The notes beneath the pieces are model-generated. The model was not told the DNA's origin, ran no database searches, and was given only the letters and a program-made list of their open reading frames with translations. 64,000 nt of DNA from Sphaerodactylus townsendi (lineage: Eukaryota), in assembly GCF_021028975.2 (NCBI RefSeq), contig NC_059439.1, positions 35,278,001-35,342,000 on the forward strand, read 5' to 3'. Numbering within the stretch: the first letter of the stretch is position 1; each line of letters begins with the position of its first letter. The position numbers were made by a program, and so were the translations under genes. This document shows, in pieces, positions 8,018 through 62,747 of the stretch.

Positions 8018-10127
8018 CCCTAGATACACCTCTGATGAGCAGCAAACTAGGAACACATTTTGGCCTTTACAAAAATTCCCAGATGTGATCACAGGCACAA
8101 AAAAGAATTTCATCCAATTAAGCGACATTTTTAGTACCGCTGTTTGGAGTCTGGCGAAAGGATAAACTCATAAACATTTAAATTGCCCCCTGAACGTGTC
8201 CTTGGGACTCTGGGGGAATAAGCGAAAGAGAGTCTTGAGACGCAAAGATGATGCAACGTTACAAAGACATCAGAAAAACGGAACAGCTTGCTGGTGGATA
8301 GTACCAGCCAACATGCCACCCATAGCGCCAGCTTAGGTGGATCCTTGTGACAGAGCTGTCCCCATCAGAGATTCATCCTTGGATAACTCTCTCTCCTTTT
8401 CGGTTGGCAGCTCAACAGAGACATCAACATACAGCAAGAGATACAAGCAAGACTAGAAAGATATCTTCTGACCAAGGGTGTGTTCTGAACCACAACAGTA
8501 TCTGCTGTCAAATGTAAGGGGTTAGTCTTGACATTTAATGTTTTTGCTTCAAGTCTAAACCCTCTAGAGGAAAATTTGGATCTCAGAATCTCTTGAAAAA
8601 AACAACCCATTTGCAAATACTGGGTCTAAATGAAGTTATGTCTGGGGCAGCCCAAATAATATGACTTTCATTAAGCAGTCATATCTGCCACTGAGAAAAC
8701 CTCTGATGAGATCGCTGAAGAGAAATGAACTGCAGTTGTAAGAATGGAGCAAGCATCAAGCAAGGTTCCGTGAGCTTCTGCTAACGATAGTTCTTTTCTA
8801 GCATCCCTCAACAGCCTCAATCAAGTTTTCCAAGAAAGACCGTTCAAAATTCTGCAGCAGGCATATCACTGGGTCGAAGCAATCATTTCCCCCCACCCAA
8901 CTCAGAGAGCGTTTGGATATTTGTCCTAAGTGAGCTGGGAAGGTTTCATAGCTCCTCCTAAGGGCATTCACAGAAGCCGGAAAGAGCTTTGAAAAGTCAA
9001 ACCACGCCCAAAATGCTACACAAATCTGATGATATCTTCCCCTAGATAATGATTTAAAAGTCTTCTGAGTTATTTCCCCAGCTGTTGGCAATCATTGGAA
9101 TCTAGTGATCGTAAGCAAAAGGTTTCCTAATGAGGTGTATCCATTAGGATTTTTGGATTTTCCAATTCACAGTTCCAATTCATTGTTTGCTTACGGTAAA
9201 CATATGTAGAGGAAAAAGGTTAGAACCTCATTATTTCTGAGCATGGTGTTTTTTTCCAGAAGTCCGGGTAAGTCTTCTATTCTAAGTTCTAGCACAAGTT
9301 CCTAACAGTATGTGAAATGGGATATGTATTAGACAACCTGAATTAGTAAATAGCCACCAGTAATCTGGGCATACATTGACTTCCAGCGTGATACAGTGGT
9401 TAAGAGCCAGCATGGCGTAGTGGTTAAGACCTGTGAACACTAATCTGGCGAACTAGATTTGTTCCCCTGCACCTCCACATGAAGCCTGCTGGGTGACCTT
9501 GGGCTAGTCATAGTTCTCTCAGAACTCTCTCAGTCCCACCTTCCTCACAAGGTGTCTGTTGTGGGGAGAGGAGGGGAAAGGGGTTTTAAGCCATTTTGAG
9601 ACTCCTGACGGTTGAGAAAAGTGGGGTATGAATCGAAATTCTCCTTTTTCCTTTGTCAAACCTCTTGAAAACCTCTTCTGTGTTTATTCTACCTACTGTT
9701 CCCTCCCGTCATAGACGCACCAAATCCTCATTCGCAGTCATGCAAACATGACTTGCTGGGGCATGGAAGAATCCGAAGACAGGGGTAATAATCCTGCGCT
9801 GGAATTAGAAATTCTTGGGAACACCCTCCTCCAGCAATGCACAGTGATAAAAGATAAATGCTAAATGCTAACTTCAAGCTACCCTCGAAGTTAGTTCTTC
9901 CAGTATCGTAGTAAGGTGATGTGGGAATGACAGTACACAGTTCCAATGTGGATCAGTGAGCGTCTCCGACCAGGAGGCATTTAATTTACACAGGGCAAAA
10001 TTGAACAAACTGGTGGGGAGGGGGGTGGAGAAGGCACCTACTGTCATAACCTGCCCTCCGTACCATCCGCTCACAGTGATATATTCCTGGTCATCAACAT
10101 TATTTCCCTGCTGTAAAAGTTCCGGAC

Positions 10128-11054
10128 ATGGAGTGCTCTAACCAGTCTGCGCCAACGGAGTTTATCCTTGCTGGGTTGCGATACCCGAAAGGACTAGAGA
10201 TCCCTGTCTTCCTGTTCTTCTTGATTATGTACATTCTGACCCTCTCTGGAAACTCCCTGATCCTCTGGGTGGTGGTGTCTGACCTCCAATTGCATAAGCC
10301 CATGTACTGGTTCCTCTGCCATTTATCCGTTATGGACATGGCTTTCTCCTCTGTTGTTGTCCCCAGAGTGATTGCGGGGTTTGTTCCCGGTGGCAAAGTC
10401 ATTTCTTTGGGGGAATGCGTATCTCAGTTGTTCTTCTTCCACTTCCTGGGTTGCACAGAGTGCTTCCTCTACACCCTGATGGCTTATGACCGCTTCTTGG
10501 CTATTTGTAGGCCTCTCCATTACAGCAGCCTCATGAACTGGAGAGCCTGCCTGGGCCTCTCCTTGGGTACATTTATTGGAGGCTGCTTGAACTCAATGGT
10601 CGAGACAATCCTCACCTTTCAATTGCCCTTTGGCCAACGAAACCTGGTGGACTATATCTTCTGTGACATTCCAGCTGTACTAAAGTTGGCTTGCGCTGAC
10701 ACAAGACTCAATGAGATGATGGTCGTGATTGACGTTGGGCTGGTGGTCATGACCTGCTTCCTCCTCATCCTGACCTCCTATGTGTATATTGTGGCAGCCA
10801 TTTTGAGGATCAAAAGCAAAGAAGGGCGTCGCCGGGCTTTCTCCACCTGCTCAGCCCATCTTACAGTGGTGGGCATCTATTACATACCTGTGCTGTTCCA
10901 TTACCTGAGACCAACTTCTCAGGACTCAATGGATGGTGTGATATGTGTGTTGTATACTGCCATAACTCCGTTTCTGAATCCTATGATATACACACTTAGG
11001 AACAAGGACATTAAGCTCGCTCTAAGGAGACACTGGGGTAAGAACTCTGAATAG
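10128..11054 (+). CDS. Olfactory receptor, family 10 (OR10G-like), 308 aa
   Basis: N-glycosylation site NQS, LHKPMYWFL, FHFLGCTECFLYTLMAYDRFLAICRPLHY, RAFSTC, PFLNPMIYTLRN. Confidence 0.97.
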   Translation: MECSNQSAPTEFILAGLRYPKGLEIPVFLFFLIMYILTLSGNSLILWVVVSDLQLHKPMYWFLCHLSVMDMAFSSVVVPRVIAGFVPGGKVISLGECVSQLFFFHFLGCTECFLYTLMAYDRFLAICRPLHYSSLMNWRACLGLSLGTFIGGCLNSMVETILTFQLPFGQRNLVDYIFCDIPAVLKLACADTRLNEMMVVIDVGLVVMTCFLLILTSYVYIVAAILRIKSKEGRRRAFSTCSAHLTVVGIYYIPVLFHYLRPTSQDSMDGVICVLYTAITPFLNPMIYTLRNKDIKLALRRHWGKNSE

Positions 11055-23556: not shown

Positions 23557-24275
23557 CATCATCATCTAAGGAGATAAATTACTTGTGCTTCAACCTCTCC
23601 CCTCCCCTTTCAAAACAACTCTCATTAGAATTTATAAACAGGAGACACCATTAGTTATTTTTAGGTGAAACAAACAAAACCTCCCCACCTGTGGGCGATC
23701 TTGAGGGAAAGGCGTTCATGGAACGGCTTATGATGGAAGCAGGTCTGGATCACATAAATACTCTTCTTCAGTCATCTAGGAGAGTTGATAGGACGCTGGA
23801 GTATCTGGCAGAAATACACCATACAAATAAAGGGTTATGATTCTCAAAGCTTCTGGAAGGATTTTCTTTGCCTTCTCATTGGAGACTGTTGTACATTAGC
23901 TGGACTTCGCTACCAGCCTCTTTGAGGTTCATTTTATGAGACAAGATGAGAGTGGACTGGTGTTCTTCTGTGAGCTTTTATTGTTTTATGTTTCCGTACA
24001 TTTTTTGCGTTCCCAATTTCTTTTTACCAGTAGATTCTTTTAGGTATATCCTTACAGTTTTCAAACATTTTATCCTCTGCGTTATGTTTTATTTACCTTA
24101 TGCTGGTCTACGTAGGTCTGTGACTGTCCTAAATGTTGATTGATTGAATGTGCATCTTTTTCTTTTAGAAATAATGTGAGGGATTGCACCTGATTTTCCC
24201 TTGAGTTCAACAGTGGATGCTGCATATGAATATCTCCTGCTCTTTGCATTTCGTAGAGTAACTGTTGACATCTTT

Positions 24276-24414: not shown

Positions 24415-25368
24415 ATGGAGCATGAAAACCGAACAGAAATTTACCAGTTCATCATAGTGGGATTCCCATACCCCCTGGAGCTGGGAGTCCCCTTGTTCAT
24501 CTTCTTTTCGCTCATCTACCTTCTGACAGTCTTGGGAAACCTTCTCATCCTCTTGGCCGTGGGGTCTGAGCCCCGGTTGCACAAGCCCATGTATTGGTTT
24601 CTCTGCCACTTGTCCTTCTTGGACATGACTGTCTCTTCTGTGGTGGTCCCCAAGGTGATTGCTGGATTCATAAAGGGAGGTGGGGTCATCTCCTTTGGCG
24701 GCTGCGTAACCCAGCTGTTCTTCTTCCACTTCCTGGGTTGCACAGAGTGCTTCCTCTACACCGTGATGGCTTACGACCGGTTCCTGGCCATCTGCAAGCC
24801 CCTCCGTTACAGCAGCCTCATGAACCGGAAAACCTGCCTCTGCCTGTCCTTTGGAACGTGGTTTGGTGGCTCGGTGCACTCCATGATCCAGACCACTCTG
24901 ACTTTCCACTTGCCCTACGGCTGCGGAACCCAAGTGGGTTATATCTTTTGTGACATCCCAGCGGTGTTGAAACTGGCTTGCGCCGACACGTCGTTCAACG
25001 ACACGGTGACTTTTGTAGACATTGGCTTCCTGGCCATGACCTGCTTCTTCCTCATCCTCACTTCCTACGTCTACATCATCTCTGCCATCCTGAGGATCCG
25101 AAGCGCTGAGGGCCGACGGCGGACGTTCTCCACTTGCGCCGCCCACATCACTGTGGTCGTGACGTACTATGTCCCGTTGGTGTTCATCTACCTCAGGCCG
25201 GATTCGCAGGACCCCCTAGATGGCGTGGTGGCTGTCTTCTACACCACCGTGACGCCACTTCTGAACCCAGTCATATACACCCTGAGGAACAAAGAGATGA
25301 AGTGTGCTTTAAAGAGGTTGTGGGTGAGAAAGACCTCTGCACCAATAGAATCATTCGCCATTCAGTGA
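24415..25368 (+). CDS. Olfactory receptor, family 10 (OR10G6-like), 317 aa
   Basis: NRT sequon, LHKPMYWFLCHLSFLD, FHFLGCTECFLYTVMAYDRFLAICKPLRY, PLDGVVAVFYT, PLLNPVIYTLRNKE. Confidence 0.97.
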   Translation: MEHENRTEIYQFIIVGFPYPLELGVPLFIFFSLIYLLTVLGNLLILLAVGSEPRLHKPMYWFLCHLSFLDMTVSSVVVPKVIAGFIKGGGVISFGGCVTQLFFFHFLGCTECFLYTVMAYDRFLAICKPLRYSSLMNRKTCLCLSFGTWFGGSVHSMIQTTLTFHLPYGCGTQVGYIFCDIPAVLKLACADTSFNDTVTFVDIGFLAMTCFFLILTSYVYIISAILRIRSAEGRRRTFSTCAAHITVVVTYYVPLVFIYLRPDSQDPLDGVVAVFYTTVTPLLNPVIYTLRNKEMKCALKRLWVRKTSAPIESFAIQ

Positions 25369-31430: not shown

Positions 31431-32375
31431 ATGGAGCCAGGAAACCGAAGCGGAGTGAAGGTGTTCATTCTTGGGGGCCTACCAAACACCAGCCAATTCC
31501 CTGTTCTGTTCTTCCTCATCTTCTTGGTCGTATACTTGATGACCGTGCTAGGCAACCTCCTGATCTTCTTCACCATCCTGTCGGAAGCCCAACTTCATCG
31601 TCTCCCGATGTACTTCTTCCTCGGCAACCTCTCCTTCCTGGACACCTGTCTCTCCACTGTCACGGTCCCCAAAATCTTAGCTGGTTTCATAGTGGCCAGA
31701 CATAGGACCATCTCCTTCACAGGCTGCCTCATCCAACTTTACACCTTCCACTTCCTGGCAAGCACCGAATGTTTCCTTTACACCGTGATGGCGTACGACC
31801 GCTACCTTGCCATCTGCCGCCCATTGAACTATGCCATGCTCATGAACAGGAAAGTCTGCTCTGGGCTGGCTGCTGGCACCTGGATCACTGGTTCCGTCCA
31901 TGCCGCCATACATACCAGCCTAACCTTTCGCTTGCCCTACTGCGGCCCCAACCAAGTTGACTATTTCTTTTGCGACATCCCCCCCATGTTAAAGCTGGCC
32001 TGCGCTGACACCTCTGTGAACCACACCGTCATATTAGCCAACATTGGGATTGTAGCCGCTGGCTGTTTTATGCTCATATGTGTCTCCTATGTGTACATTG
32101 TGGTGGCCATTTTGAAAATCCAAACAATGCAGGGAAGACACCGGGCCTTCTCCACGTGCAGTGCTCACCTCACCGTGGTGATACTATATTATGGGCCTCC
32201 CATCTTTATATATATGTTCCCGTCTTCAAGTGACTCGACCTATGGGGCCCTGGCTGTCTTCTACACTATCATCACCCCCATGTTGAACCCATTCATATAT
32301 ACGCTGAGGAACAAGGAAGTGAAAAGATCTCTGTCCAGATGGTTAAGTGGACACTCGGTTCTTCAGGAGAGATAG
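31431..32375 (+). CDS. OR10S1: Olfactory receptor OR10S1-like, 314 aa
   Basis: ATG at 31431 directly after a pyrimidine tract/CAG acceptor. FHFLASTECFLYTVMAYDRYLAIC, HAAIHTSLTFRL, IGIVAAGC and AVFYTIITPMLNPFIYTLRNKEVK match OR10S1 as recalled. Confidence 0.92.
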   Translation: MEPGNRSGVKVFILGGLPNTSQFPVLFFLIFLVVYLMTVLGNLLIFFTILSEAQLHRLPMYFFLGNLSFLDTCLSTVTVPKILAGFIVARHRTISFTGCLIQLYTFHFLASTECFLYTVMAYDRYLAICRPLNYAMLMNRKVCSGLAAGTWITGSVHAAIHTSLTFRLPYCGPNQVDYFFCDIPPMLKLACADTSVNHTVILANIGIVAAGCFMLICVSYVYIVVAILKIQTMQGRHRAFSTCSAHLTVVILYYGPPIFIYMFPSSSDSTYGALAVFYTIITPMLNPFIYTLRNKEVKRSLSRWLSGHSVLQER

Positions 32376-32533
32376 AGCTGGAAATGTATTGGAGACATTA
32401 CATCTAGGTATATCGGAGTGGGTTGTGAGGGGCGGAATCTTCCTGTGGATCTAGAAGGACGTTCAAGTGAACTGAGGTGCAGAACACGGGGGGGGGTGTG
32501 TGTGTGTTTGATCCCATCCCCCCGAAAATATAT

Positions 32534-32674
32534 GGCTCATTCCGCACATGCAAAATAATGCACTTTCAAACTGCTTTCAGTGCTCTTTGAAGCTGTGCGG
32601 AATAGCAAAATCCACTTGCAAACAGTTGTGAAAGTGGTTTGAAAACACATTATTTTGCATGTGCGGAAGGGGCC
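32534..32674 (+). mobile_element. 141-bp Harbinger-like MITE
   Basis: TIRs; TAT TSD. Confidence 0.85.
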
Positions 32675-33539
32675 TATGTGAAATATGGGGTTTTTAATGA
32701 TCTATACACAGGGTGATGTTTTAGAGAGCAACCTGAACATTTCTTCTTGTATAGGTGGTATATACGTGGCTTCCCACTGAAGCAATTGGTGTAACTTCTG
32801 GGCTGGAAACCACAACTTGGTGCTTGCAGTGTTGATCATCTTGGGCACCCTTCTTCTTTTGTGTGTATAAATTCTGCACACCTTGGATTTCAAGGTTTTT
32901 AAGTACCCGTTCAACCATCACAATCAATTATTATTTAGAAAAAAGCATGTAATATTCCAATACCCTTACCTGGATGTCCTAGACCAGCTTTTGGAAGCTA
33001 AGCTGGCTTAGTTTTGGTTAGTATGTGAATGAGAGACCACTGAGAAAATCATGTACTTTAATTAGAAATAGGTTTTTTTAAAAAAGTACAGCGCAGACTG
33101 AAATATTTAATTGTTCCTTGTGGTTTGAAGTGACACAGTCCAGGAATGAAGACACCAGAGGAAACTTCTGCTCATCTCCTTCGATGTGAGAATGTCATTC
33201 CTACACTCATTTCACCCACTTGCTTGGAAACACAGGACTTCTGTCTCATTGCCCCTATGCGCCGGGGGCCAAAAGGTTATACTAGGCCATTTGGTGTGGA
33301 AATGTTATACAATTCACATTATCTTGGTCTACCCATCTGCTCTGAACCCTGCCTTGTTCATTTCATTAGCGAGAGACCTGTAGGGACGCAGACGCTCCGT
33401 GTGGCGTGTGGTGCTAATGACATAGAAAAAGTTACCTCCGAGTGGCGTAGCCAAACATACAACTCGGCGATGCCTGCGAAGCAATTCTGACCTGTGACAA
33501 CTTCGCACCTGTGCCTGCTATACCTGTTGCTACATACTC

Positions 33540-33790
33540 TGCCATAATTGGCCCAGAGGGAATTGTCTCATTTAAACCAGCTGCATTGGCCAAGTGCCAC
33601 TTTGGTGGAGACGGAAATTGCTTTGGGCCCTGAATTCTCTCTGCGGCTCTGGGAGCTTTTAGACACTGTTGCGCTTAGTGACTTTGCCTAATGAGACACT
33701 GGAGGGATTTGAGTTCCAGACCCTGCTTCATTAGCCACGGGGAACTGCAGGCCACGAAAGTTGCCAGCGGCAAAGGAGATAATTAAAGAT
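33540..33790. promoter_or_regulatory. Candidate OR enhancer (H-element/Greek-island-like)
   Basis: TAATTG-G-CCCAGAGGGA (33545-33561), ACTTTGCCTAATGAG (33681-33695), TCATTA-G-CCACGGGGA (33728-33743) and TAATTA (33780) in a repeat-free block. Confidence 0.55.
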
Positions 33791-34018
33791 GCAGCAAAGT
33801 TGAGAATTGCCGGTGCCTTTGCTAAGATCTAGTGAGGATCAGAAGTTCACATGGAAACGCTGTATCTTAGCAACTTGGACACTAAAAGTTACCCATGAAA
33901 GAGGAAGTTGGCCAAGAAGGTTTTCTTTCTGATATCAGACACTTGAACGCTTAGCAATTATTTGCCCTGCCAGAGCTATAACAATTCTGTGGGAATTTGG
34001 AAACATTACAGAGAACCT

Positions 34019-34033
34019 CCACTAGGGGCAGCA
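34019..34033 (+). promoter_or_regulatory. CTCF-like motif between the OR cluster and the first V
   Basis: CCACTAGGGGCAGCA resembles the CTCF core CCASYAGRKGGCRS. Confidence 0.4.
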
Positions 34034-35375
34034 CTCAGCTTCCAGATCAGCTTAGCTTTCTATTTTAACAAAGTAAATTAAAAACCATATTCAAACAATA
34101 TCTCCATTTCTGTTCCATTAGATAACTTTGAATAGAACCTGCTGGCACAGAGAACAGCATTAGGTCTGAGATTAAGAAGAGCCTTCATTGTGAAACATTG
34201 CTTTTTATCGGGTTACAATTATAACCTATATGGGCTTGAAAAAGGATAACGAAATAAAACCATATCCAGATATGGATTTATAGCACCTCAAAAGCTTCCC
34301 CTGTTGAATTTATGGAAATTATTTCTAAAGTTATCTAATGGAACAGAATTTGAGATATTGTTTGAATATGGTTTGAGATTCACTTTGTTATGACTCATGT
34401 GTTGAGTAGATGTACACGAAGGTGTAGTATCTGTAACAATGTCTTCAATATACACCTACCTCGCAAATAGGGTAGCCTTCTATTTTATCTAGCAACTTTC
34501 TGGTCCTTATGACAGCTGCAAAGCAGATGTCACAAATCTGGTGCAATTGTAACCTCTACCTGTGGGTTCTGTGGGGCAGAACTTGGAATGAGTTTGCAAC
34601 AACAAATTTTAAAAACAAAATGGTTTACTTTCTTAACATATAACATCAACATTTACATCACACTTCAGGTTGCATTTTCAAGTCCTTATATTTACAGTCT
34701 ACTGATACTGCCAAGTCCAATTCTTCTTTGCAAGTGGGTTGGCTCCTGAAGACTCCAAGGGCTTGATGAAGGTTTCCAGGAGAACTCTCACCCATTACAA
34801 CCACAAAAAACAACAACCCTGAAACAATAAACTCCAACATTTACAACATAGCAAAAATAAACAACTACCTTCCCACTAGTTCCCAACAACATTGCAGTTA
34901 CCTTAACAAGGTGTTAAGGGCTTAAACCAATTGGCCATGCTGACAGAGGCTGATGGGAATTGTAGTTCCTGAACATCTGGAGAGCCACAGGTTCCCTACC
35001 CCTGGCTTAAACAAATCAAGGTCCGAGTCTGGTAGCCTTCTCTCCTCCAAACTACATGAGCTCTGCAGCCTCCTGCTGCTTTGAGTCTCCACCCCTTTCT
35101 GGATCAACCCATTCTGAGCATGGGGGTTACACAATCTCAGATACTAGAGCAGTTTGTAGGCAGCATGTCTATTTTCACCTATCATGATTCTGTCTGTCAG
35201 GCTCATCAAAATATGAGGCCTTGCTCCAGGTTAGCCAGGCAATCAATGAGAGGCTTGGTGCCAGGACACGGAGCCTGTGATATTACAAGCTGTGTGTTAT
35301 CACTTCCAGAGAAAACCAGAAAGTGACATAGGGTGGCTCTAGAAATTGCTGGGCTCTATAGTAAAAACCATAGAG

Positions 35376-35578
35376 CAGCGGTTCTCAACTTGTGGGTCGA
35401 ACAAGACCCCCTTTGGGGGTCGAACGACCCTTTCACAGGGGTCGCCTAAGACCATCGGAAAACACATATTTCCCAAGGTCTTAGGAACCGAGACGCAAAT
35501 AATTTTATGGTTGGGGGTCACCACAACATGAGGCACTGTATTAAAGGGTTGTGGCATTAGGAAGGTTGAGAACCACTG
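35376..35578. mobile_element. hAT-Charlie-like MITE
   Basis: TIR CAGCGGTTCTCAAC; 8-bp TSD CCATAGAG. Confidence 0.85.
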
Positions 35579-36020
35579 CCATAGAGCTTCCAGTGATTCC
35601 TAGAGCTATAGTCTGTCATTTCCTGGGGTGGAAACCTCCTCCACTCCAACTACTGATGTGGCAAGAATTAAACAGAGATCAGTTTCCATGAAGAAAAATA
35701 GCTGCTTTGGAAGGGGAGCTCTAGGGCATTTTACCCTATTGTTCTGTCCCTCCTTCTCCCGGAAGTCCATTCTCCAAATCTCCAGGTATTCCTCCAACCT
35801 GGAGCTGGCATCCCTAGTTGTCAACCTCCTGGTTGGACCTGGAGAACTGTGGGAATTATACCTGGTCTCCAGACAACAGGGTGGGGTGGGGTGGGAAGGG
35901 GGGAACTCTTTTTCCATAAACATTCACTTCAGATTTCCTATTCCCCCATTCCACTGAAGGAGTGAAATATTAAATGCATCACATCAAACTTGATGAGACA
36001 AACAGGTCCTTCGGTGATTA

Positions 36021-36254
36021 CCGTGTTTCCCCGAATATATGACAGTGTCTTATATTAATTTTTGCTCCCAAAGATGTGCTATGTCTTATTTTCAGGGGAT
36101 GTCTTATTTTTCCTGGTGTTCTGTTCGTCGGACATGCTTCCAAACAAAAACTTTGCTATGTCTTACTTTTGGGGGATGCCTTATATTTCGCACTTCAGCA
36201 AAACCTCTACTATGTCTTATTTTTCGGGGATGTCTTATATTAGGGGAAACAGGG
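36021..36254. mobile_element. Tc1/mariner-type MITE
   Basis: TA|CCGTGTTTCCCC...GGGGAAACAGGG|TA. Confidence 0.75.
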
Positions 36255-36670
36255 TATTAGCTATGATGGCTAAATGGAGGATCCATGTATAGAGGCAATA
36301 TACCTTTGAATTCCAGTTTCTAGGAAGGAAGCAATGAGTAAGAACTGTAGATTGCATGGTGTATTTCCAAGCATCCTTTGGTTAGCCAGTTCAGGAAACA
36401 GGTTGCTGGATTAGACATAAAAAATAGCTCTCTGATGTTATCTGATTCTGAGTCCTCCTTGGGGCAGAGTGGAACTGAATAGAGACTGAACAGCCCGATT
36501 CTGTAGATTTATTCCCCCTTTGTTCCACATACCTCTTGCTTCTGATTGGCTGGGTGTAGCAACAGGAACCTCGTGTGTGAATTATGATTCAATTGTGATG
36601 TTTCCTGAGCTGAAAAATTCAGCTCCACCACTTGGGTCTTCAGCAAGAGCAGTCAGAGATCATATTGAAG

Positions 36671-37855
36671 ATGTCCCCAAGGGTTCTGCTGGTGCTACTG
36701 TTAGTGTTTGTTGGTGGTAAGTACTGAGTATCCCCTCTCCTATGTAATCTAATCCTCTCTTCTCCAACAGTGCAGTGTCTCGCATTAATTTTTATTTGTT
36801 CATGCAAACACAAACATCGTAAAAATCAAATGCAAATACAAACACAAAACTCCATAAAAACAAATGGTTGCAAACCACCCACTTAACCATCCTAACTAAT
36901 GGAAATTAAGTCCAAATGCCAAGGCTCATTCTGCACATGCAGAATAATGCACTTTCAAACTGCTTTCAGTGCTCTTTAAAGCTGTGCGGAATAGCAAAAT
37001 CCACTTGCAAACAGTTGTGAAAGTGGTTTGAAAATGCATTATTTTGCATGTGCGGAAGGGGCCCAAAAGAACTTTTTCCATTCTCGTATTGGACCATCAA
37101 TTATCTAATTTGTATAATAATTTTTTTTGATAAAAAGTTAACTGTACCGAATTATAAAACTCTTTTACTTTACCAATTCAATCGTGCCAGTTAGGAGCGA
37201 CTTTTTGATTCCAATTTCTTTGCAAAAAAAAAAATCAATCTTGCAGCAGTAATCGTATGAAGAGCTATAATCCTTTTGTCTGTGGGAAAGTTCGGTAAAT
37301 AATTTAAATTTGAAAAGTTTCTGGAGTAAATGGCATTGGTTTTTCCATACCAGTTGATGGCGTTTTCACAACTTGTGACCAAAACGATGAAGCACGGCTA
37401 CGTTCCCGCCATAAATGGAAAACTCCGCTGCAAAACCAACAGCCTATTTTCCTTTGTTTTGTTCATTTTGGCTAATCTCTTCTCTCCACTTCCAGGGATT
37501 TCCAAGATCTATCCTGATGGATAGTTTGTTCAAAAATACTCTGAATTAACTACACATTATTCTCATGCAGGGGTCAGGTGCCAAGTCCAGGTGAACCAGA
37601 GCTGGCTGGTGTTCACCAGGGAAGGAGAGACCGCTAGCATTGCCTGCAAGTACGAAACTAGCTCTTTCTACAGTTTGCAGTGGTACAGGCAATTCCCGGG
37701 AGAAGGACCAACACATCTGCTCACGATAGTGGGAGAGGAAGTCAGAAAGGGACCCAACTTCAGTGCTGTGCTCAAAAAAGACAAGAAGACGAGTCATCTG
37801 CACATCTCAGGAGTCCAGCACAAAGACACAGCCACCTACTTCTGCGCTGTGGAAG
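36671..37855 (+). CDS. TRAV: TCR alpha V gene segment V1 (leader 36671-36716, V exon 37571-37855)
   Basis: Leader MSPRVLLVLLLVFVG|gtaagt (phase 1). The spliced frame gives C...WYRQ...DTATYFCAVEA. A 23-RSS follows. Confidence 0.93.
36923..37063 (+). mobile_element. 141-bp Harbinger-like MITE in the V1 intron
   Basis: TIRs; CAA TSD. Confidence 0.85.
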
Positions 37856-37894
37856 CACAATGAGACAGGTGCACTGGAAACTTGGGCAAAAACT
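37856..37894 (+). other. 23-RSS of V1
   Basis: CACAATG + 23 nt + GCAAAAACT. Confidence 0.9.
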
Positions 37895-60998: not shown

Positions 60999-61774
60999 AT
61001 GATATCTCTGACAACTCTAATTGTATCAATGGCTTTCATTTCAGGTAAGCAGCCTTCTTCTTGGTTGTGGTGGGTTTTCCAGGCTGTGTGGCCATGGTCT
61101 GGTAGATCTTGTCCCTAACGTAGATCATAACGTCTGGTAGATCTTGTTCCTCGCCTTTTTCTTCTCCAATTTCTCCATGTTTGGAGGAGGGCTTTGGCTC
61201 CCAGATCTCTTCTTCATCCAGTCTTCACTGGTGTTCTGTCATCCTGGCCGCAAGTATGTTGTGTTCCTTCACACCTTGTATCTTCTACTCTCTATTTTCC
61301 ACCCCAGGGTAAACAAACAAGAGTTGATTCCACTATATGTGTCTTCCTGAACTTTCTTTCATCTCTCACTTTGGGAAACTTTACATGCAGGAATGTTTGC
61401 ACTACTTAGTTAATATTGTTCCTCAGAGTTTGGTTTCTGTGCATTTGGGAGGGAAAAATGAAAATCCGGTGTCTTTTCTTCCCATAAGGGATCAATGGAA
61501 ATTCAGTAAGACAGACCCAGAGCCCTCTTCTCATAGAGGAAGGAGAACCCGTGTTTATCAACTGTACTTACGAACATTCTGGCTTTCCAACTCTGTTCTG
61601 GTACATTCAACGCTCGAACAGCGAGGGCCCCCAGCTTTTGGTGGCAGGATATTCTAGAAAAGAGAATAGCGGCAGCTTCTTCGCGGAACACCTCAAGGAT
61701 GGAAAATCCTTCCATTTGCAAAAAGGACTCAGCACCCAGAGAGACTCGGCCACCTACTTCTGTGCCATGAGTGA
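60999..61774 (+). CDS. TRAV: TCR alpha V gene segment V8 (leader 60999-61044, V exon 61489-61774), TRAV9-like
   Basis: Leader MISLTTLIVSMAFISG|gtaagc. V reads GINGNSVRQT...INCTY...PTLFWYIQ...SFHLQKG...DSATYFCAMSD. Confidence 0.93.
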
Positions 61775-61929: not shown

Positions 61930-62530
61930 CAGAGCATAAATAGATAAGGTATATATAGACGAAGTAGTACAGAAACTGAGATTTATCAAACAGAACAATT
62001 TGAGTGGGCTACTAAACCCGGAAAATGGCTACCTAACAAACTAAGAAAACAAAAAGATTCTAATATAGGCTCATTCCGCACATGCAGAATAATGCACTTT
62101 CAAACTGCTTTCAGTGCTCTTTAAAGCTGTGTGGAATGGCAAAATCCATTTGCAAACAGTTGTGAAAGTGGTTTGAAAATGCATTATTTTGCTTGTGCGG
62201 AAGGGGCCATAGTTAGGGCTTTATGGAAGAAAGGCATAATAACTACACATGATATAGAAATAGAGAATTGTCTGGTAAACTATTATGAAAATTTATATAC
62301 AGATAGATTAAAAACAAATAATGAAGAAATACAAAAATGTTTTTAAAGGTTTTCCCCTATAAATGGACAAGATTTGAAAGAACGGAATAAACCCATAAAG
62401 AGTTTGAAATACAAGAAGTAATTAATTCCTCAAAAAATGATAAAGCCCCAGGCCCGGATGGATTATCAGAAAAAATATTATAAACAGCAATCTCCTATAT
62501 TAGTGCCTAAATCAAACAAGTAATTAATAC
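61930..62530 (+). mobile_element. Degenerate L1/Tx1-like ORF2 fragment with nested MITE (62068-62208, ATA TSD)
   Basis: FEWATKPGKWL...NYYENLY...KAPGPDG motifs. Confidence 0.65.
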
Positions 62531-62747
62531 TAATTAAGTGCCACCAGGTTGCAGTCGACTTACAGAGACTTGTCCGGGGTTTGATTCAAGGGATCAACAG
62601 AAGTGTGAATGTGAATTTTTATTACAAATGGTTTCTTAGCCCCCTTGGTGGCCCCGATGAAGACAGAAAGGTGGAATGATTTTGTAATTTTTCTTTAAAA
62701 GAAACAAAGAATGAATATTCAAACTGATTAAAGTTTACATTTTGCAG

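Follow-up and report, generated by a model that had tools for sequence, protein, structure and literature searches.

The OR cluster of this gecko ends beside the V genes of its TCR alpha/delta locus, and the junction raises the question of whether reptiles keep an OR enhancer there, in the place that the H element occupies in mouse. Mouse is the species in which nearly all OR gene-choice enhancers have been defined; the deepest conservation described for one in the searchable literature is that of the J element, within mammals only, and we found no reptile OR enhancer in that literature. An earlier note on the window (the whole 64-kb stretch of DNA analysed here) had proposed that the block at 33540-33790 is a reptilian counterpart of H.

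We first describe the locus (Table 1). The OR genes that we checked in the window are intact (n = 5; Pfam 7tm_4, E 1e-48 to 1e-53). The last of them shares 87% identity with the OR10S1-like gene of Paroedura picta and 84% with that of Eublepharis, falling to 70-81% in other squamates and to about 65-69% in turtles. Three other ORs in the window have OR10G2/OR10G6 as their nearest mammalian relatives, and in mammals the OR10G family adjoins TRAV. Eight V exons, all on the + strand, follow 3' of the ORs, the final one ending at 61769, and the gene model of the orthologous V in python splices to a TCR-alpha constant domain. Apart from OR and V genes, no gene was found in the 64 kb. The order of OR10G-like gene, OR10S1-like gene, element and V is unchanged across all loci compared.

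The block is intergenic and lies 1.17 kb 3' of the last OR, in the same place as in all eight other species that we compared. The stop codon at 32375 is 1,165 bp 5' of 33540, which agrees with the distance of about 1.2 kb given previously. The gap on the other side had been put at 2.9 kb; since the first V exon starts near 37570, it measures 3.8 kb from 33790. Two further features of the OR side were observed. The OR at 24415 is preceded, at about 0.5-0.85 kb, by a second collinear conserved non-coding block (23564-23968), which matches Paroedura at 71% over 415 bp and Elgaria in part (23613-23710); because it carries the homeodomain-type sites TCATTAG and CCATTAG, it is probably the promoter or a 5' exon of that OR. 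In Podarcis, a duplicated fragment of OR 3' coding sequence (L003:13096-13280; 83% to window 32142-32326) lies 2.2 kb 3' of the intact OR, inside the model of that gene.

Contigs of four related species were mapped over 31431-37400 to give a depth profile. Depth over 33222-34017 was low, at the same level as over OR coding sequence, so this stretch is single-copy and had rightly been called repeat-free; one related-species contig covers 33076-33909. The unique stretch is bordered by high-copy repeats, at 32426-32823 on one side and from about 34416 on the other. Together with those at 34416-35211, 35411-35609, 36008-36405 and 36804-37201, the very high-copy repeats reach up to 10^5-10^6 times the unique level in the four related species and occupy most of the gap between OR and V. 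A sub-threshold Rfam match to mir-3145 on the minus strand (32542-32666; 31 bits vs. a gathering score of 98) falls inside one such repeat and is most likely spurious. A profile of the element has a single significant match in the window, and thus the element is not a repeat family.

We compared the window with orthologous OR10S1-like loci, taken 10 kb either side of the OR, from eight other sauropsids: two geckos (Paroedura, L001; Eublepharis, L002), a lacertid (Podarcis, L003), a skink (Tiliqua, L004), an anguid (Elgaria, L010), a python (Liasis, L005) and two turtles (Malaclemys, L006; Carettochelys, L009). In all eight, the interval from the OR to the first V aligned collinearly outside coding sequence at the proposed block and nowhere else. 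Other non-coding matches outside geckos were dispersed repeats, except for the collinear block that precedes the OR at 24415. With blastn, the alignment spanned 33078-33892 in Paroedura (69%, E 3e-95) and 33123-33910 in Eublepharis (74%, E 1e-138), and beyond geckos it covered 33545-33882 in Tiliqua, 33684-33875 in Podarcis and 33614-33890 in Elgaria. An nhmmer profile built from five squamates, with no turtle sequence, found the copy in python (L005:13813-14062, E 3.6e-19) and the copy in Malaclemys (L006:18443-18802, E 2.7e-21), which has the OR on one side and a V exon (at 23716) on the other. Copies were likewise found by nhmmer in Elgaria (E 2e-77) and in Carettochelys (L009:12206-12584, E 6e-50), where a V-set gene follows 1.2 kb further on. 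The 5' half (~33100-33545) was matched by nhmmer in Podarcis (6e-37), Tiliqua (5e-60) and python (1e-29) and by alignment in Elgaria, and nhmmer detected no match to it in turtles.

Conservation above the flanking background, on which the earlier note had staked its proposal, was therefore found in eight sauropsids including turtles, with flanks that do not align. Element-wide identity among species is modest (50-78%). The element lies 0.8-7.5 kb from the OR and 1.2-4.9 kb from the first V in the species compared; because it is as near the first V as the OR, position alone does not settle its target. An alligator locus (P0033), whose OR model is 46% identical and not an orthologue, gave no match to the element, and in the one mammal species searched, Phyllostomus discolor, there was no profile match within 10 kb of OR10S1 (L008). 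A metagenome scan with a 21-base core pattern returned six matches, all of them chance by profile scoring. The analysis shows the position of the element, its single-copy state and purifying selection on it across squamates and turtles, and this selection is concentrated on motif pairs.

Table 1. Coordinates of the genes, the conserved element and its sites, numbered from the first letter of the window.
Feature	Position	Strand	Remarks
Last OR gene, OR10S1-like	31431-32375	+	Orthology anchor; ATG at 31431, stop at 32375; Pfam 7tm_4 E 1.7e-51
Whole conserved non-coding element	~33100-33910		~800 bp; in all squamates tested; single copy
Homeodomain site CTAATGA	33414-33420	+	In the squamate-only 5' half; alignment A4
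Core common to squamates and turtles	33540-33880		~340 bp; approximately the proposed block plus 90 bp; nine-species alignment A3
Composite unit 1	33545-33561	+	TAATTG-G-CCCAGAGGGA, then AT, giving a GGGAAT half-site; EBF-like
NFI-like TTGGC-N5-GCCA (putative)	33586-33599		GGC of TTGGC invariant in 9/9 species (A3)
Composite-like unit 2	33689-33705	+	TAATGA-G-ACACTGGAGG; overlaps the proposed H-like key site, 33680-33695
Composite unit 3	33728-33744	+	TCATTA-G-CCACGGGGAA; mean column conservation 0.82
Homeodomain site GAGAYAATTAAAGA	33776-33789		Minus strand TCTTTAATTR, an extended-homeodomain-like form
Decayed copy of ancestral (T)TTAATGAGCTC	33817-33829	+	Window reads CTTTGCTAAGATC; A3
Strongly conserved tail beyond the proposed block	33834-33874		GAGGATCAGAAGTTCACATGGAAAC, then CTTAGCAAC
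First TRAV-like V exon with RSS	37570-37863	+	V-set E 9e-14; product ends YFCAVEAQ, then CACAATG heptamer

Could the motifs have come together by chance in neutral DNA? All motif strings quoted previously are present at their coordinates, including TAATTA at 33780-33785, the site GACTTTGCCTAATGAG at 33680-33695 and TCATTA-G-CCACGGGGA at 33728-33743. Their numbers are unexceptional. Clusters of at least four TAATKR per 251 bp occur three times in the window, against 1.3 per 64 kb in first-order Markov simulations. (The two other clusters are at 9047-9233 and 62319-62536; the former precedes the OR at 10128 by about 0.9 kb and may be the promoter of that gene.) A strict composite, defined as TAATKR, 1 nt and an EBF 10-mer with at most two mismatches to TCCCNNGGGA, has one match in the 64 kb, at 33545, for a chance expectation of about 0.5. 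The degenerate composite pattern of PMC11643329 has 156 matches in the same window and so discriminates nothing; units 1 and 2 of this gecko each depart from it at one position and unit 3 at two. Of the 11 strict composites in the nine loci (242 kb), 8 belong to element copies, which total 3.7 kb; because these copies are homologous, this reflects retention rather than independent events. Since the counts are within chance, the motifs alone are not significant, and we take their significance to lie in conservation rather than number. A chance cluster, which the counts by themselves would allow, is already contradicted by the collinear conservation from geckos to turtles (E 1e-19 to 1e-138) between unaligned flanks, and we regard it as extremely improbable.

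A coding reading of the ORF at 33146-33490 was rejected, as the orthologous stretches of geckos contain in-frame stops, and a structured-RNA reading was rejected with an RNAalifold consensus of −2.2 kcal/mol over 435 columns. A separate possibility is that the OR10S1-like gene has a long or spliced 3' UTR that includes the element, or that the element is an exon of a non-coding RNA, and that it is conserved for its role after transcription. The annotated span of the Malaclemys OR10S1-like gene (L006:10001-19116) runs from the OR start codon to a point 8 kb beyond the end of its single coding exon (10975) and crosses the element, hinting at read-through or spliced 3' transcripts, so that a 3' UTR of either kind is conceivable. 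Against this, the distance from stop codon to element varies from 0.8 to 7.5 kb, conservation takes the form of short motif islands with indels between them, the folding energy is very small, and an Rfam search returned nothing in the block. We therefore consider a conserved transcript part to be very unlikely.

We next asked where in the element selection acts. In alignment A3, the four sites named in the earlier note have a mean majority fraction of 0.81, vs. 0.65 for the other 188 columns of 33540-33790; when four segments of equal size were placed at random, 0.025% scored as high (P 2.5e-4). The core contains a conserved AATTAAAG site and three composite-like units of a homeodomain site and an EBF site. 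In some species, two of the units show a spacing of 0 nt or the non-canonical core TAAC. Unit 1 takes the form TAATTG, one base, YCYNNRGGGR, AT in eight of nine species, python being without it. Its turtle form is TAATTG-T-TCTCAAGGGA, and the form in this gecko has two mismatches to TCCCNNGGGA. Unit 3 reads TAATTA-R-(C/A)C..GGGGAAT in the other six squamates, and TAATGA-ACCCCGGGGA and TAACGA-ACCCTGGGGA in the two turtles. The 3' half of both unit 1 and unit 3 is GGGAAT, which forms the outer half of the palindrome bound by EBF, ATTCCCNNGGGAAT.

Unit 2 had been interpreted differently, as a likeness to the key site of H, given there as AACTTTTTAATGAG. That likeness does not hold: it needs a 2-nt gap, and the TAAT core is derived. 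In the alignment CTAA..AG is invariant, and six of the eight other species carry C as the fourth base (CTAAC). A better interpretation of the site is one more unit built like the other two, TAAYNR-G-NCCCNNGGGR, with variants such as TAACAA-G-CCCCATGGGG in Malaclemys and TAATTA-G-ACCCTAGGGA in python. In python (L005:13850-13866), where unit 1 is absent, unit 2 is now a near-consensus composite, an instance of site turnover.

The remaining sites vary in how well they are kept. The homeodomain site GAGAYAATTAAAGA is the best-kept of the four sites named previously (majority fraction 0.89), with an AATTAAA run in at least eight of nine species. At 33817-33829, an ancestral TTTAATGAGCTC site is retained as TAATGAG in python, Carettochelys, Podarcis and Paroedura. 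Two ancestral sites are weakened in the gecko studied here: TAATTA has become TCATTA, and TAATGAG has become GCTAAGA. The longest near-invariant runs are found at 33840-33874 (CAGAAGTT, ACATGG and TAGCAAC, each in at least eight of nine species), and the end of this tail reads TTTGCC-NN-AGCAAC in Tiliqua, Elgaria and Malaclemys, which would resemble the textbook consensus of an RFX X-box. The site at 33586-33599 is a putative NFI-like site; the textbook NFI consensus is TTGGC(N5)GCCAA. In the squamate 5' half, CTAATGA (33414-33420) is invariant among the window, Paroedura, Eublepharis and Elgaria.

The same 5' half bears on whether the element belongs to the TCR alpha/delta locus, regulating the first V from upstream or forming its boundary, and active in thymocytes but not in olfactory neurons. 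A CACCTG E-box and a Runx-like TGTGGY string are kept there in squamates, and in all species the first V follows the element at the distances given above. The Runx-like string, however, reads TGTGGC in this gecko, and the best-kept letters of the element, TAATTG and TAATTA joined to GGGAAT half-sites, are of the olfactory type of grammar. EBF is not a T-lineage factor, and none of the enhancers known to us lies at the 5' edge of the mammalian TRA locus; both points count against a TCR function. Such a function is, in our estimate, quite unlikely.

Homeodomain-rich conserved non-coding elements are also common near developmental genes, and the element might be a tissue enhancer of another, non-OR gene in the neighbourhood, its sites serving other homeodomain factors. 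Against this, three homeodomain sites abut EBF-like half-palindromes at 0-1 nt, and in published work OR enhancers are enriched for this pairing relative to other co-bound sites. The identity of 50-78% is also unlike that of typical deep developmental elements, and the window offers no such gene as a target. We judge this alternative to be unlikely.

Thus, the reading of the element as an OR enhancer at a conserved OR/TRAV junction is well supported by its conservation in sauropsids, by its best-kept homeodomain and O/E-type sites and by its OR10G/OR10S-type neighbours. We put the probability at roughly 0.6 that it is an olfactory-neuron Lhx2/EBF enhancer of the 'Greek island' type, serving the adjacent OR10G/OR10S1 cluster in cis. 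The factors bound, the olfactory activity and the target genes we infer by analogy with mouse. Lhx2 would occupy the TAATTG, TAATTA and TAATGA sites, and EBF (O/E) the adjoining YCCNNRGGGAAT half-palindromes 0-1 nt away. Together, the pair would recruit Ldb1 and the element would stay open within OR heterochromatin, and the open element would give one nearby OR promoter a higher probability of being chosen, in cis.

The build of the element resembles that of mouse Greek islands. Composites with 1-bp spacing mark these islands, in distinction to OR promoters and the remaining co-bound sites, the spacing of 1 nt being stated in PMC11643329. In the window, a homeodomain site beside an EBF-like site at a spacing of about 1 bp is present in unit 1 (33545), and two further units accompany it. 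The composite probe of the mouse island Sfaktiria, TAATTG-A-TCTCCAAGGA, has the same 1-nt spacing as unit 1, and the turtle form of unit 1 is close to it. As in Sfaktiria and Lipsi, homeodomain and EBF-like sites 1 nt apart are found in several copies within a few hundred bp, in or beside an OR cluster. In contrast, the mouse islands are defined by ChIP and ATAC in neurons, whereas the gecko element is recognised by its sequence and conservation, and two of the three sauropsid units depart from the 1-nt spacing or the TAAT core in some species. For this gecko species, the run index listed no RNA, ATAC or ChIP run. There are also parallels with J, a class I OR enhancer that is found from platypus to human, acts over 3 Mb and for which no homologous region was found in frog or zebrafish. 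In each, several conserved homeodomain sites, an O/E-like site and one composite lie in a core of a few hundred bp, and each was found through its conservation between species and with nhmmer. J, however, serves mammalian class I genes, and the sauropsid element lies beside class II-type OR10 genes and has its known conservation within sauropsids.

The relationship to H itself is a separate matter. Mouse core-H, the enhancer of the MOR28/Olfr1507 cluster (mm10 chr14:52547909-52548295), contains one strong and four permissive composite motifs and lies 55-75 kb upstream of the nearest OR, Olfr1507. What defines H, P and J alike is a set of several conserved homeodomain sites that have an O/E site close by, and the extended homeodomain site of H and P is AACTTTTTAATGA (PMC7804114). 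The sauropsid element shares with H several homeodomain sites together with O/E sites, and both are intergenic and at the edge of an OR cluster. The sauropsid copies lie beside TCR alpha/delta V genes; in mouse, the published coordinates of H and the TRAV map would place it likewise, between the OR10G/OR4E cluster and the TRAV genes, and OR10G-type genes are presumably present in the H-side cluster, as they are by sequence in the gecko. Unlike mouse H, the sauropsid element is downstream of the last OR, by 0.8-7.5 kb, and AACTTTTTAATGA is not conserved in it. Since TAAC is found in six of the eight other species, the likeness to AACTTTTTAATGA is derived in this gecko rather than inherited. Looser likenesses are seen in the minus-strand TCTTTAATTR at 33776-33789 and in the ancestral TTTAATGAG at 33817-33829. 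The element is a probable positional counterpart of mouse H; that it is also a true orthologue of mammalian H, an enhancer of the OR/TRAV junction shared by descent, is possible but doubtful.

Geckos and turtles separated roughly 280 million years ago, and conservation over this distance is unusually deep for an OR enhancer of this kind. Selection on homeodomain-EBF pairs from geckos to turtles suggests that the logic of composite motifs is not a mammalian invention. The element offers a short, defined sequence for reporter or deletion work in non-mammals, and it makes the amniote ancestry of H a question that one alignment could answer. If orthology with H were true, the junction enhancer and its Lhx2/EBF grammar would go back to the common ancestor of amniotes, which published time-trees place more than 300 million years ago, and the element would be the oldest traceable OR gene-choice enhancer, having kept its place while the ORs around it were replaced.
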